Shown piece by piece: positions 28,797-57,957 of a stretch of 64,000 bases of DNA; position 1 is the first letter of the stretch, and every line of letters begins with the position of its first letter. The notes beneath the pieces are model-generated. The model made no database searches, was not told the origin of the DNA, and saw only the letters and a list, made by a program, of their open reading frames with translations. A program made the translations under genes and the position numbers. The DNA is taken from sequence record MF360958.1; one strand, given 5' to 3'.

Positions 28797-28881
28797 GCGG
28801 GTATGGTGGAAATGGTAGACACTGGGGTCTTAAAAACCCTTGCTTTTTAGCGTGCCGGTTCAAGTCCGGCTACCCGCACCA
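28797..28881 (+). tRNA. trnL: tRNA-Leu(TAA)
   Basis: Acceptor GCGGGTA/TACCCGC, anticodon arm GGGGT-CTTAAAA-ACCCT, long variable arm, encoded CCA. Confidence 0.95.
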
Positions 28882-52761: not shown

Positions 52762-53358
52762 ATGGCAAAGTTAAAATATTTTTATTCTGTGATGAATGCT
52801 GGAAAATCTACTCATCTATTACAAGTAAAACACAATTACGAAACATTTAATTCAAATGTTTTACTGTACAATCACCAAAGTGATAATCGATACGGTTCAG
52901 ATAAAATTAGCTCACGACTTGGAATTGAGCAACCTTGTATTAGTGTAAACCATAGTAGTGATGTATACATTGATATAAAAAAGAAGCATGAATTTCAACA
53001 TCTGGCTTGTGTATTAGTGGATGAAATACAATTTTTCTCATACCAACAGGTTTATCAACTTTCTGATGTAGTGGATTATTTAAACATACCAGTCATAACA
53101 TATGGCATCAAAACAAATGCTTTTGGTGAACTATTTGAAGGATCAAAAGCGATTATTGAATTGGCAGACAATATTGAAGAAATTAAACAACTTTGCTTTT
53201 GTGGCTCAAAAGCAACAATGGTTAGACGTTTTGATACTAATGGAGATATTGTGAAACAAGGTGAAGAAGTTGTTTCAGGCGCTGAAGAAAAGTATATATC
53301 ATTATGTCGTAAACATTTTAAAACATTGGAAAATGTGAATAGTGTTTTAAAACATTAA
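52762..53358 (+). CDS. tdk: thymidine kinase
   Basis: MAKLKYFYSVMNAGKST, VDEIQF, CFCG...YISLCRKH. Confidence 0.95.
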   Translation: MAKLKYFYSVMNAGKSTHLLQVKHNYETFNSNVLLYNHQSDNRYGSDKISSRLGIEQPCISVNHSSDVYIDIKKKHEFQHLACVLVDEIQFFSYQQVYQLSDVVDYLNIPVITYGIKTNAFGELFEGSKAIIELADNIEEIKQLCFCGSKATMVRRFDTNGDIVKQGEEVVSGAEEKYISLCRKHFKTLENVNSVLKH

Positions 53359-53747
53359 TCTGGTTCATTTATAACAATACTGGTGGGATCAATTACTACC
53401 TTTTCAAAAAATTCACCAATAGGTAGTGTTTGTTCTTCACCAGTTTCTTTATGACGCACAGTAATATTTGTTTCGTAGTCCACGCATTTACCAAGTTGAC
53501 GTGCCAACATATTGATTGAGAGACGATAGTTATGATAATTATACAATAGATCTTCTTGATATTTAAATGGTTTAAATAGAACCTTGCCGCGTGTAGGATG
53601 TTGTACATGGCAATAATTCGTTATAAAGTAATAATAGCCATATTCTTTATCATGTGAACATTTTTTAAGTTCTTCAATTTGTTGTTTTGTAAAGCTTTCT
53701 TTTTGGTGAGCCTTTTTTAGTATATTACCTTCAAGAATCTTACTCAT
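53355..53747 (-). CDS. terL: large terminase N-terminal fragment fused to a split-intein N-half
   Basis: T4 gp17-like YFITNYCHVQHPTRG...F.PF.YQ...RQLGK (Walker A), then CVDYETNITV... and a stop; TATAAATA at 53773-53780 (minus). Confidence 0.85.
   Translation of the reverse strand: MSKILEGNILKKAHQKESFTKQQIEELKKCSHDKEYGYYYFITNYCHVQHPTRGKVLFKPFKYQEDLLYNYHNYRLSINMLARQLGKCVDYETNITVRHKETGEEQTLPIGEFFEKVVIDPTSIVINEPD
53358..53486 (-). mobile_element. split intein N-fragment (43 aa)
   Basis: Starts with Cys straight after Walker A GK; CVDYETNITV (block A) ... PIGEFFEK resembles short TerL IntN fragments. Confidence 0.8.
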
Positions 53748-53938
53748 AAGTTAACCTCATATGTTACTGACGTATTTATAAAAATTATTATTGTTGTGTA
53801 TTGACATATATCGTAATATAGATATACTATACTAGTAATATCTATAAATTTATATTCAAAATAATAATCATGTTTATTTTGAATAAATAAACCATTATAA
53901 GAATTATGTGAAAAATATAAAAAACAATTACATATATT

Positions 53939-54376
53939 ATGCAAAGACGTACCGTTTCATTTATTGAACAAATAGTTAATAATTTTCTTGGTTTTATCGT
54001 AAGTTTTTTCATACTTAAATTTATAATTGTACCATTATGGGGATTTCAAGCTAATGTTCATGATGAATTTCTAATAACCGTTTTATTTTTTATTATTAGT
54101 ATTATAAGAGGGTATATATTTAGACGTGTATTTAATAGTATTGAGCATCAAACCTATATAGGTTCTGCTATTGAACAATTCTTTAATGTTGGTTCTGGAT
54201 TTATAATTTATCTTTCGTTATGGTCTTTTGTGATTACTCCAATTTGGAATTTTGAATCAACATTTATCGATGATATTACAATAAATGGTATATATTTTGT
54301 ATTTAATTATGCGAGAGCTTTAATTGTAAGGCGTTTTTTTAATTATTTAACATTTAAAACATATAATTCAACTTAG
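53939..54376 (+). CDS. membrane protein with an internal duplication
   Basis: Two copies of S(F/A)IEQxxNxxxGF...W.F......I..I.F....R..I.RR.FN. Confidence 0.75.
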   Translation: MQRRTVSFIEQIVNNFLGFIVSFFILKFIIVPLWGFQANVHDEFLITVLFFIISIIRGYIFRRVFNSIEHQTYIGSAIEQFFNVGSGFIIYLSLWSFVITPIWNFESTFIDDITINGIYFVFNYARALIVRRFFNYLTFKTYNST

Positions 54377-55968: not shown

Positions 55969-57957
55969 ATGTCTACTATTAAAAATTATGGCGTTGCGGG
56001 TGTAGCGTCTGATGTTCAACTTGGTAAGAAAGGCGGTCGTTTTATCTATGATAGCGCCAACGGCGTCTTTAAACTTACCGCACAAGACGGCACTACAGCA
56101 TCCTCAGTACAAATTGCAGATGCTGTAGAACAAAACGAAGCAACCAGCCTTTCACAAGTTGAAAGCTTAATATCTAATATTGATCCATCTAATATTAGTG
56201 GTCTTGGAACTATGTCTGAACAAGATGCAAGCTCTGTAGCAATTACGGGTGGTACTATTAATGGCACAACCATTGGCGGTACTACAGCAGCTGCTGGTAG
56301 TTTCACAACTATTGATGCGAGTACTAGTGTAACTGCTCCTGATGGTACTTTCACAAATGCAGTAAACGTTGATACTATTAATGAAAACACTGCTGATGTC
56401 GGTGTAACTGCTGACGGTGTTCTTTTAAAAGATAGTAATGTAACCGCAGGTACTGTGAATGCTGATACAATCAGCGAAAACACTACTGACAACGGTGTGG
56501 TAGTTGATGGTGTTACTCTAAAAGATGGTGGTATGACCACAACTGGTGATGTAACTATTGGCGGCGACCTAACTGTACAAGGTGAAACTACTGTTCTAGA
56601 TGTTACCAACCTAAGTGTTGAAGATCAACTTATTGAACTAAACAGCGGCTTTACTGGTACTGGTCAAATTTCTGGCGACTCTGGTATTTTTGTAAACCGT
56701 GGGGATAATTCTGATGCTCAACTAGTTTGGGATGACGCAAATCAAGTTTGGCGTTTTGAATTTGCTGATGGTACTCTCGCAGATCTAGAAGCAAACCTCA
56801 CAAGTGTTGTAGGTGCAGAACAGGGTGGTTTCGGAACTGATATCTCAGCATATGGTGCTAATTCCCTTGTGCAAGCAGATGGTTCTGAACTCGCTGTGGG
56901 CTCCGAACATCAAGTACTAACCGTTGGTTCCGGCGGTGATATTAGCTACGAGTATGTTAATGACGTTCGCCGTTCCAGTGATGGAAAACTTGTTGTTGAT
57001 ACTACAAATGCTACTTCTACTGATGCAGAATATCTAGACATGGCAAGCAGCACTGGTTCATTAACTTTATCTGCATTTAATGAAGCTCGCAGTGGTGATG
57101 TAGATCTTGTTCTAGCGGCACAAAATAATGGCGAAGTAATTATTGGTGATCCTAATGATCCTTCTGTACTTTCTGCACAGAGCAACGAAAGTTTAACTGT
57201 TACTGGTGGCGATTCTGATGACAGTGCTGATGCTGGTGATCTAATTCTAAACGGTGGTGACGGTACAAACACTTACGCATCTGGTGATGTTATTCTACAA
57301 GGTGGTACGGGCGGTTCTGCTGAAGGTATTACTGTCATTCGTGATTCCGCTGGAAATGATATCACCCGTTTTGACGCTGGTGTTGCATCTGCAACTGATT
57401 ACAGTGTTATTGAAAATGGTATCGGTGATGTAAGCATTTCTGCTGCCGGTGGTAGTACTGATATCGATATGGTACTTTCACCTAAAGGTGCTGGTGTTGT
57501 TCTTCTACCTGCTTCTTATGACATTAGCTCCGCTGCTGACGAAGCGGTAGCAAACAAGGGCTATGTTGATAGTCAGGTTCAAGAAGTTGCTAATAATGTA
57601 GATCCTAAAGTACTACGTGCAACCTTCACTGCTGATAGCACAGCAACAAGCTTTAATATCGGTACTATGCCTAGTGTTTCTGGTAAAACTTACTATGTTA
57701 AGCGTGTAATGCTCAATGTTACTACTGATTTCTCTGGTAACAGCATCGATCACGTTGTAGTAGGCGACGGTACTAACACTCTAGTTGCTGAACCTGAAGC
57801 TGATATCGTTAGTGGTACATACTTTGTAGACCTAAGCTTTGCAAACGCAACTTCTGGTGGCTCTACAATTTCTGCTACCTTCAACAATGCTTCACAGACT
57901 GCTGTAGCACCTACTGCTGGTGCTGTAACCGCAGTTGTCGAGTACGAAGTACTATAA
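55969..57957 (+). CDS. virion structural protein, tail-fibre-like
   Basis: G/T/S/D-rich beta-repeat protein, late-promoter-like boxes upstream, terminator downstream. Confidence 0.6.
   Translation: MSTIKNYGVAGVASDVQLGKKGGRFIYDSANGVFKLTAQDGTTASSVQIADAVEQNEATSLSQVESLISNIDPSNISGLGTMSEQDASSVAITGGTINGTTIGGTTAAAGSFTTIDASTSVTAPDGTFTNAVNVDTINENTADVGVTADGVLLKDSNVTAGTVNADTISENTTDNGVVVDGVTLKDGGMTTTGDVTIGGDLTVQGETTVLDVTNLSVEDQLIELNSGFTGTGQISGDSGIFVNRGDNSDAQLVWDDANQVWRFEFADGTLADLEANLTSVVGAEQGGFGTDISAYGANSLVQADGSELAVGSEHQVLTVGSGGDISYEYVNDVRRSSDGKLVVDTTNATSTDAEYLDMASSTGSLTLSAFNEARSGDVDLVLAAQNNGEVIIGDPNDPSVLSAQSNESLTVTGGDSDDSADAGDLILNGGDGTNTYASGDVILQGGTGGSAEGITVIRDSAGNDITRFDAGVASATDYSVIENGIGDVSISAAGGSTDIDMVLSPKGAGVVLLPASYDISSAADEAVANKGYVDSQVQEVANNVDPKVLRATFTADSTATSFNIGTMPSVSGKTYYVKRVMLNVTTDFSGNSIDHVVVGDGTNTLVAEPEADIVSGTYFVDLSFANATSGGSTISATFNNASQTAVAPTAGAVTAVVEYEVL

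Follow-up and report, generated by a model that had tools for sequence, protein, structure and literature searches.

A terminase large subunit encoded in three scattered pieces and probably rebuilt by protein splicing in Salicola phage SCTP-2

The large terminase subunit (TerL) is indispensable to tailed phages, and in the 440-kb cultured Salicola phage SCTP-2 it is spread over three scattered genes. The stretch of DNA analysed here, hereafter the window, comprises the last 64 kb of the 440,001-bp genome, i.e. record positions 376002-440001 of MF360958.1; according to the record metadata, the phage was cultured from an Italian saltern and its host is Salicola sp. PV4. Near the end of the window lies gene 534, an open reading frame (ORF) of 130 amino acids (aa) on the minus strand. 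We consider it very probable that this gene is the first of three separately encoded pieces of the only TerL of SCTP-2, the other two being genes 267 and 224, and that the complete protein is rebuilt by splicing. On this reading, the Walker A and Walker B motifs of the packaging ATPase would each be completed only by a splicing event.

The three pieces and the predicted terminase

Gene 534 joins two unlike parts. Residues 1-87 are the N-terminus of a T4 gp17-type TerL, ending ...MLARQLGK at the Walker A lysine, and will be referred to as the N-extein E1. Residues 88-130 are a Cys-initiated stretch of 43 aa, CVDYETNITVRHKETGEEQTLPIGEFFEKVVIDPTSIVINEPD, whose start, CVDYETNITVRHKETGEEQTLPIGEFFEKV..., resembles the first two strands of an intein; this part is the putative N-terminal intein half, IntN1. 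The terminase identity of the first part is backed by PHROG large-terminase families, which match residues 9-88 (E=1.6e-12) and 10-97 (E=3.8e-10), by a tblastn search with gene 534 that matched 1769 phage records, mostly T4-like TerL genes, and by the depositor, who labelled the 100% identical segment MF360958.1 429356-429748 'terminase large subunit'. Pfam returned nothing useful for gene 534 alone; the Terminase_6N model begins about where the fragment ends. The original prediction, made from the letters of the window, had described 87 aa of TerL up to RQLGK, a Cys-started fragment of 43 aa and a stop overlapping that of the thymidine kinase gene tdk, and the ORF call reproduces all of this exactly. 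It had also stated that neither a matching partner nor the rest of the terminase is present in the 64 kb, in agreement with a tblastn search of the window with the TerL of Pseudomonas phage PA5oct, in which gene 534 was the sole TerL-like sequence.

In all, three coding sequences of SCTP-2 carry the depositor's label 'terminase large subunit', namely genes 534, 267 and 224. Genes 534 and 224 share a strand, and gene 267 runs the other way. Gene 267 is laid out as a C-terminal intein half (IntC1, 115 aa), an extein (E2, 87 aa) and a second N-terminal intein half (IntN2, 95 aa). IntC1 has a block B that reads CADDH and a C-terminal end GILSHN, followed by the +1 Thr of E2. E2 itself is the Walker A-to-Walker B segment of the terminase, TAVAALYLLWYAMF...GLSISLLY (starting TAVAAL), and IntN2 starts CLDGETTVKLRDK.... 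Gene 224 begins with IntC2 (112 aa), whose block B reads TTDH and which ends NVSQ, and continues with E3 (CDEFAFV...PTIS, 24 aa, carrying Walker B), the contiguous intein 3 (CLAPG...GILGSN, 225 aa) and E4 (333 aa), which extends from the C-motif, TGGKCIITTTP..., through the Terminase_6C nuclease domain. In Pfam, gene 224 matches Intein_splicing (62.9 bits) and Terminase_6C, and the isolated 225-aa intein 3 alone scores 43.1 bits with Intein_splicing.

When the four exteins are concatenated, they amount to 531 aa, equal in length to the intein-free TerL of PA5oct, with which they are colinear across all three junctions, no junction residue being missing or duplicated. Splicing in silico restores RQLGK-T in Walker A and LLY-CDE in Walker B, and the third junction, PTIS-TGGKCIITTTP, sits just before the C-motif. 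The features of a T4 gp17-type TerL, an ATPase with Walker A, Walker B and C-motif followed by an RNaseH-like nuclease, come together only after this in-silico splicing. The tryptic peptides predicted to span the second (E2-E3) and third (E3-E4) junctions are GLSISLLYCDEFAFVR and FWASIYPTISTGGK, respectively.

A gene that is short and isolated, convergent with tdk and surrounded by no packaging genes could be the decaying remnant of an old terL, the work being done by a complete terminase elsewhere. In a tblastn search of the whole 440-kb SCTP-2 genome with the 531-aa PA5oct TerL, however, no second terL copy was found. Gene 534 matched residues 16-94 of the query, gene 267 residues 94-180, and gene 224 residues 181-216 together with 204-505; TerL residues 1-94 are matched nowhere else in the genome, and genes 267 and 224 lack exactly that segment. 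Since each quarter of TerL occurs once in SCTP-2, the intact copy elsewhere that the original prediction had allowed for is excluded for the genome as deposited, and with it a relic. The ORF, its Cys1 and the position of its stop are also conserved in relatives of 50-73% identity and in dozens of 50%-identity clusters, and we regard decay of gene 534 as barely credible. SCTP-2 has been cultured with a named host and so is viable, and it must therefore make a working terminase.

Two split inteins and one contiguous intein

A whole version of the first intein is found in Vibrio phage VAP7, whose TerL, a single protein of 756 aa, is interrupted by a contiguous intein at this GK|C...SHN|T site. 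Residues 20-113 of gene 534 align with VAP7 TerL 46-135, from the extein through GK|C into the intein, and residues 4-202 of gene 267 align with VAP7 TerL 175-375; the ~39 VAP7 residues between both alignments correspond to the split point. These alignments indicate that genes 534 and 267 carry the two halves of one intein, which is whole in VAP7. The division is into a short IntN of 43 aa, with block A only and with a last ~13 residues that differ between relatives, and a long IntC of 115 aa, with blocks B, F and G. A search of the rest of the genome for an IntC-TerL gene, as the original prediction had proposed, leads to this same gene 267, which lies 173 kb away, has an intein ending SHN|T and restores GKT.

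The residues expected of a class-1 intein are in place. The Cys1 nucleophile is Cys88, directly after RQLGK in gene 534, and the block B His, the terminal HN and the +1 Thr are all present in IntC1 (CADDH...GILSHN|T). Gene 267 was modelled with AlphaFold on the basis of 39 homologues. IntC1 is confident and beta-rich in the model, with a block-mean predicted local distance difference test (pLDDT) score of 75-94, and Foldseek relates the model to the VidaL (2.2e-5), gp41-1 and Cat (3.6e-4) inteins. IntC1 is predicted from this model to have the HINT fold. The modelled E2 superposes on the T4 gp17 ATPase with a root-mean-square deviation of 0.8-1.2 Å over 72-74 residues. At the sequence level, the best match of IntC1 in the PDB is the C-fragment of the Cat intein, 6dsl_B, a weak one (E=1.6e-3, 21.9 bits); IntC2 does not match 6dsl_B in a PDB sequence search, and for the short peptides IntN1 and IntN2 the same kind of search yielded chance matches only.

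In the assembly that we propose, each fragment would be translated from its own late transcript, after which IntN1 would dock into the nearly complete IntC1 and finish the HINT fold, as in an atypical split intein. Class-1 splicing would join K87 to Thr+1 and so create the Walker A sequence GKT, IntN2 and IntC2 would join ...LLY to CDE and so create Walker B, and intein 3, just upstream of the C-motif, would remove itself by splicing in cis. This would yield a 531-aa T4-gp17-type TerL, whose ATPase active site would exist only after all three splicing events. We infer the splicing, its order, the late co-expression of the pieces and the orthogonality of the two split inteins, Int1 and Int2. 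They would have to be mutually orthogonal because a reaction of IntN2 with IntC1 would lead the second fragment, with its IntC-extein-IntN order, to cyclise or polymerise. IntN1 and IntN2 are identical at only 9 of their first 32 residues in an ungapped global alignment, and IntC1 and IntC2 at 32 positions. The suggestion of the original prediction that the packaging motor is assembled by trans-splicing from unlinked, separately transcribed genes is supported on sequence evidence. The partner that it had envisaged, a single gene with an IntC, Walker B and nuclease, was right in so far as an IntC partner exists and wrong as to number, as there are three genes with two split inteins and one contiguous intein.

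Such a single partner might still be sought in gene 224, whose first ~112 aa form an IntC with blocks B, F and G and which has both Walker B and the nuclease. IntN1 would then pair directly with IntC2, and the two N-terminal halves are similar over their first ~18 residues. In the product of this pairing, however, the 87 residues that lead from Walker A to Walker B would be missing, as gene 267 alone encodes them. Moreover, it is IntC1 that ends HN|T and restores GKT, while IntC2 precedes CDE, and VAP7 has IntN1-like and IntC1-like sequences as the two ends of one intein. A terminase made from genes 534 and 224 only is thus highly improbable, and the three-gene assembly is retained in what follows.

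Conservation in metagenomes and in a cultured vibriophage

The architecture of gene 534 is widespread. Its metagenomic homologues P0002-P0005, which are 50-73% identical, end with RQxGK, a Cys-started stretch of 37-44 aa and a stop. A HMMER search of 1.8 billion cluster representatives with gene 534 gave 1138 matches, and 60 of the 148 top cluster representatives examined consist of E1, GK|C, a further 31-68 aa and a stop; the first intein residue is Cys in nearly all of these 60 N-pieces (one example, P0233, starts with Ser). Gene 267 has 545 homologues, and the IntC1-E2-IntN2 layout is present in 102 of the best 120. Among the 118 homologues whose IntC1/extein junction could be placed, the C-terminal HN is found in every one (118/118); 107 have Thr at +1 and 11 have Ser, and the block B sequence is CADxH with few exceptions. 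A homologue search with residues 1-140 of gene 224 gave no matches, and relatives of IntC2 were taken from the loci L016 and L101 (metagenomic and viral loci are given here by our own L numbers). A viral-contig locus search with gene 534 likewise gave no matches, and one with gene 267 did not return the L016 contig.

This conservation amounts to purifying selection on the catalytic residues, and real splicing is therefore favoured over mere docking of the halves. The N-half, for which the original prediction had suggested a new orthogonal split intein, is not a one-off; it belongs to a large family of atypical split inteins at the Walker A site, already sequenced and apparently undescribed, with hundreds of members unannotated in metagenomes.

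The same break is found in a second cultured phage. In the T4-like Vibrio phage vB_VmeM-32 (KU160494.1), terL is broken at the same Walker A split-intein site, with gp16 and a 225-aa N-piece of gp17 (IntN 36 aa) at ~80 kb on one strand (L103:3150-3827) and IntC-gp17C with gp18 at 1.1 kb on the other strand (L104:1102-3216). The two gp17 halves are ~79 kb apart, the interruption of the gp16-gp17-gp18 cluster coincides exactly with the split site, and the genome paper of vB_VmeM-32 makes no mention of this. A split intein in this way lets genome rearrangement break an essential gene. The C-piece of vB_VmeM-32 additionally contains a contiguous intein just after the DE of Walker B.

These data also bear on whether the break in SCTP-2 is real. 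Contiguous inteins occur at the same GK|T site in cultured phages such as VAP7, and a sequencing or assembly error might have broken a contiguous, intein-bearing terL of that kind. Yet gene 534 is separated from the other pieces by 173 and 211 kb, gene 267 is encoded on the other strand, and every piece comes with a start codon, a Shine-Dalgarno sequence and a promoter-like motif of its own. The break recurs in separate metagenome assemblies (L011, L013 and L015) and in vB_VmeM-32, and middle pieces of identical architecture number in the hundreds. Given this recurrence in independent metagenomes and in a cultured phage, together with the selection on catalytic residues, the assembly error against which the original prediction had cautioned is excluded for practical purposes, its probability being vanishingly small.

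Expression signals

The sequence upstream of gene 534, ...ATATGAGGTTAACTTATG, includes a GAGG Shine-Dalgarno sequence, and genes 267 and 224 have equivalent GAGG ribosome-binding sites. Further upstream lies a YATAAATA motif (TATAAATA in gene 534) that matches the T4 late-promoter consensus and whose start is 33 nt from the ATG in gene 534, 45 nt in gene 267 and 36 nt in gene 224. The motif also precedes the portal gene 90 and gene 89, and over these five genes the distance ranges from 33 to 45 nt. Counted over both strands, the 440-kb genome has 210 copies, of which 63 lie just upstream of an ORF (at least 80 codons; 12-60 nt from motif end to ATG), and under a uniform model the chance of a copy before all three terL pieces is ~4e-7. 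A sigma-70 promoter scan was uninformative, with 17 sites vs 14.5 expected.

The occurrence of YATAAATA before all three terL genes makes their co-expression likelier than temporal control and suggests coordinated late transcription, under which any control point would be post-translational. The original prediction had seen a possible control point in the separate transcription of the pieces, for which there is no support so far, as all three genes share the late-promoter-like motif of the portal gene. The 63 ORF-upstream copies constitute a candidate late-promoter map of SCTP-2; among the genes concerned are all terL pieces, the portal gene and several putative structural genes of giant size.

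Linked and dispersed pieces and the tail of IntN2

IntN2 of the gene 267 homologues falls into two length classes, one of 30-61 aa (61 homologues) and one of 95-106 aa (40 homologues, among them SCTP-2), and the arrangement of the terL pieces differs between the two groups. In the short-IntN2 contigs L101, L107 and L108, E1, E2 and E4 are on one strand within ~5 kb; further large ORFs lie between the terL pieces in L101 and L107, and in L108 the N-piece is directly upstream of the middle piece. These three loci are a doubled 'fractured gene'. The two intervening ORFs of L101, of 429 and 436 aa, both belong to PHROG 22677, have no Pfam name and are judged from a sequence motif to be Vsr-like endonucleases. 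In the long-IntN2 contigs L100, L105 and L106, E2 is the only terL piece within up to 10 kb on each side, ~2.4 kb of upstream sequence being available for L106. The N-piece loci L011, L013 and L015 hold the N-piece alone, with a T5orf172-type endonuclease gene directly after it in L015, and L016 holds the C-piece alone, which is 66% identical and has the same IntC2-E3-intein-E4 layout. Beside the SCTP-2 terL pieces no homing-endonuclease remnant was accepted, the only candidate being a sub-threshold GmrSD_C match in gene 225 (E=0.0039). In the SCTP-2 clade, the terL pieces are scattered and the endonuclease genes lost, and the linked and dispersed forms together give a series from contiguous intein to fractured gene to scattered genes.

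The additional length of IntN2 in the SCTP-2 clade is a ~60-aa tail that is conserved (56% mean column identity), beta-rich in the model (block-mean pLDDT 81-89) and without a block B His or catalytic residues. The idea that it is a degenerate HINT middle (block B/N4), which would make the pairing a canonical one of long N and short C, was tried and rejected. A fusion of the long IntN2 with a shortened IntC2 had no Pfam match, that of a short IntN2 with the full IntC2 scored 30.1 bits, and alignment of the tail profile to the IntC1 profile with hhalign was not significant; the long-N, short-C pairing was therefore discarded.

So far the tail has been found only where the terL pieces are dispersed (3 loci vs 3), and on this ground it is conceivable, though in our view rather unlikely, that dispersal and tail are functionally linked and that the tail enforces the orthogonality or order of the two split inteins. 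It could prevent IntN2 and IntC1 of one polypeptide from reacting with each other, or act as a gate to the second ligation. If this were true, a jumbo phage would build its packaging ATPase through a regulated, stepwise checkpoint that acts after translation, and SCTP-2 would be a natural, culturable source of two orthogonal split inteins with a short IntN.

Two observations were made on the same contigs. L100, the closest metagenomic relative of SCTP-2, contains a TnpB/IS605 OrfB (Cas12f-like) gene (L100:17907-19187, minus strand) ~7 kb from the terL middle piece. Intein signatures are present at L107:16381-17328 and L108:20468-20864, in a RecA-like gene and a DEAD-box helicase; since these nearby genes also bear intein signatures, inteins appear to accumulate in these jumbo-phage genomes with a fractured terL.

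Covalent or non-covalent assembly

Several points weigh against the assembly of TerL by three splicing events. Block B of IntC1 has Ala, not Thr, three residues before its His. IntC2 ends with Gln (NVSQ|CDE) in place of the usual Asn and has no penultimate His; its relatives end with Asn (ISSN|C in L016, KTKN|C in L101), and Gln-terminated inteins do splice, slowly. Fused in silico, Int1 and Int2 score 20.6 and 30.1 bits, both below the Pfam gathering threshold of 35.8. The conserved ~60-aa tail of IntN2 is superfluous for a complete HINT fold, because IntC2 is equally long in both clades. Finally, splicing to a ~61-kDa TerL is suggested by comparison of sequences, and the late-promoter reading by a motif count.

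Some of these points would suit a terminase whose intein halves serve as dimerisation handles only, or one in which splicing takes place at some junctions only. The Gln end of IntC2 and its missing penultimate His, as well as the extra folded tail on IntN2, are in keeping with such an arrangement, and split enzymes that work without ligation are known, e.g. the genes-in-pieces ribonucleotide reductase (cited in PMC10448857). Nevertheless, Walker A is cut at GK|T and Walker B at LLY|CDE, which would place any retained intein inside the ATPase active site, and Kelley et al. argue that an intein, while present, prevents TerL from forming oligomers (PMC5050341). Cys1, the HN and the +1 nucleophile do not vary over the 118 homologues, for which dimerisation alone would not select. 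Non-covalent or partial assembly is accordingly considered improbable, and splicing at all three junctions is preferred.

Comparison with known systems

Atypically split inteins have been described in TerL proteins, including GOS-TerL (IntN 37 aa, IntC 115-122 aa), AceL-TerL (25/104) and the consensus intein Cat (PMC2677866, PMC11766414). Like the split inteins of SCTP-2, they have a T4-type TerL as host and combine a short IntN (25-37 aa in these known cases; block A only) with a long IntC (104-122 aa; blocks B, F and G). SCTP-2 differs in having two atypical split inteins in one protein, and whereas the GOS terminase locus, in common with the other fractured loci, has a homing endonuclease gene between the halves, the SCTP-2 loci have none beside the pieces. 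The insertion sites are different as well. The chain of the Cat C-fragment (6dsl) continues into a C-extein starting CE, and in L019, the closest natural CatC relative found (E=2.4e-9), the junction reads REHC|CEF and lies after the ATPase domain and before the nuclease domain, the intein halves flanking an endonuclease gene; in SCTP-2, Int1 is at GK|T (+1 Thr) and Int2 at LLY|CDE. The SCTP-2 split inteins are thus probable relatives of those of GOS-TerL, AceL-TerL and Cat at different sites, not alleles.

With regard to position, the three SCTP-2 inteins all correspond to motifs occupied by cis inteins in mycobacteriophage TerL proteins, where TerL1-a/b, TerL1-e and TerL6-f are found in the P-loop (Lys/Thr), Walker B and C-motif (PMC5050341). 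The VAP7 intein is the direct homologue of IntN1+IntC1, and both it and the mycobacteriophage inteins are cis-splicing in a single gene, unlike the two split inteins of SCTP-2. Fractured genes consist of an N-extein-IntN, a free-standing endonuclease and an IntC-C-extein in one locus (Dassa et al. 2009, PMC2677866). This layout is found, doubled, in L101, L107 and L108, but SCTP-2 departs from one locus, one strand and an intervening endonuclease, its pieces being 173 and 211 kb away.

Two further systems invite comparison. In cyanobacteria, dnaE-n and dnaE-c are far apart on the chromosome and DnaE is rebuilt by trans-splicing. As with terL of SCTP-2, an essential enzyme comes from unlinked genes, but DnaE is cellular, its intein has a canonical split (long IntN, short IntC), and there are two pieces and one intein. 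SICLOPPS (split-intein circular ligation of peptides and proteins) uses engineered IntC-X-IntN constructs for peptide cyclisation. The single polypeptide of gene 267 likewise runs from an IntC through an extein to an IntN, but its halves derive from different inteins, and it would represent a natural design for tandem ligation of three fragments, not cyclisation.

In the searchable literature, outside which subscription papers largely fall, so that a prior description is possible, we found no three-gene terminase, no protein made by two trans-splicing events, no account of a protein needing two trans- plus one cis-splicing or of a Walker A-site atypical split family, and no mention of the terL split in SCTP-2 or vB_VmeM-32. 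The sole mention of an SCTP-2 intein found there concerns a PolB mini-intein (PMC6892783). Atypical split inteins with an IntN of ~30 aa are wanted for protein semisynthesis, and a natural pair that must be orthogonal within a single cell is a direct lead. Pipelines that use TerL as a phage marker get fragments only in the SCTP-2-like group.

Gene context and other features of the window

Gene 534 is flanked by tdk and by the gene of a DUF7220 protein. Its TAA stop overlaps by two bases the TAA (53356-53358, plus strand) of the convergent tdk. The gene on the other side, at 53939-54376 on the plus strand and divergent from gene 534, encodes a 145-aa hydrophobic protein with two DUF7220 repeats (E=2.6e-31), and a perfect TTGACA-16-TATACT sigma-70-like site is located upstream of it at 53801-53828. 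The coordinates of the terL pieces and other features are collected in Table 1.

Table 1. Coordinates of the terL pieces, their signals and other features. Positions without a record or locus name are those of the window.
Feature	Position	Strand	Remarks
Gene 534, TerL piece 1/3 (E1 + IntN1)	53355..53747	-	ORF call; PHROG TerL matches
N-extein E1, residues 1-87	53487..53747	-	57.5% identity to PA5oct TerL residues 16-94
IntN1, residues 88-130, 43 aa, Cys1 start (putative)	53358..53486	-	Aligns with VAP7 intein start
TAA stop of gene 534	53355-53357	-	Read from sequence
Shine-Dalgarno GAGG of gene 534	53755..53758	-	7 nt upstream of ATG
T4-late-promoter-like motif TATAAATA (putative promoter)	53773..53780	-	Begins 33 nt upstream of gene 534 ATG
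Thymidine kinase gene tdk	52762..53358	+	Convergent with gene 534
Gene 267, TerL piece 2/3	MF360958.1 256428-257321 (L007:11428-12321)	+	173 kb from gene 534
Gene 224, TerL piece 3/3	MF360958.1 215993-218077 (L006:19993-22077)	-	211 kb from gene 534
Doubled fractured terL locus of L101	L101:8396-14155 (ENA k141_1153898, 282-kb contig)	one strand	
tRNA-Leu genes, anticodons CAA and TAA	27706-27790 and 28797-28881	+	~1 kb apart

Elsewhere in the window, positions 55969-57957 (plus strand) hold an ORF of 662 aa with a high content of Thr, Gly, Asp and Ser, which lies in a local island of 42.5% G+C, as against ~30% in the rest of the window, and which may encode a fibre or surface protein.

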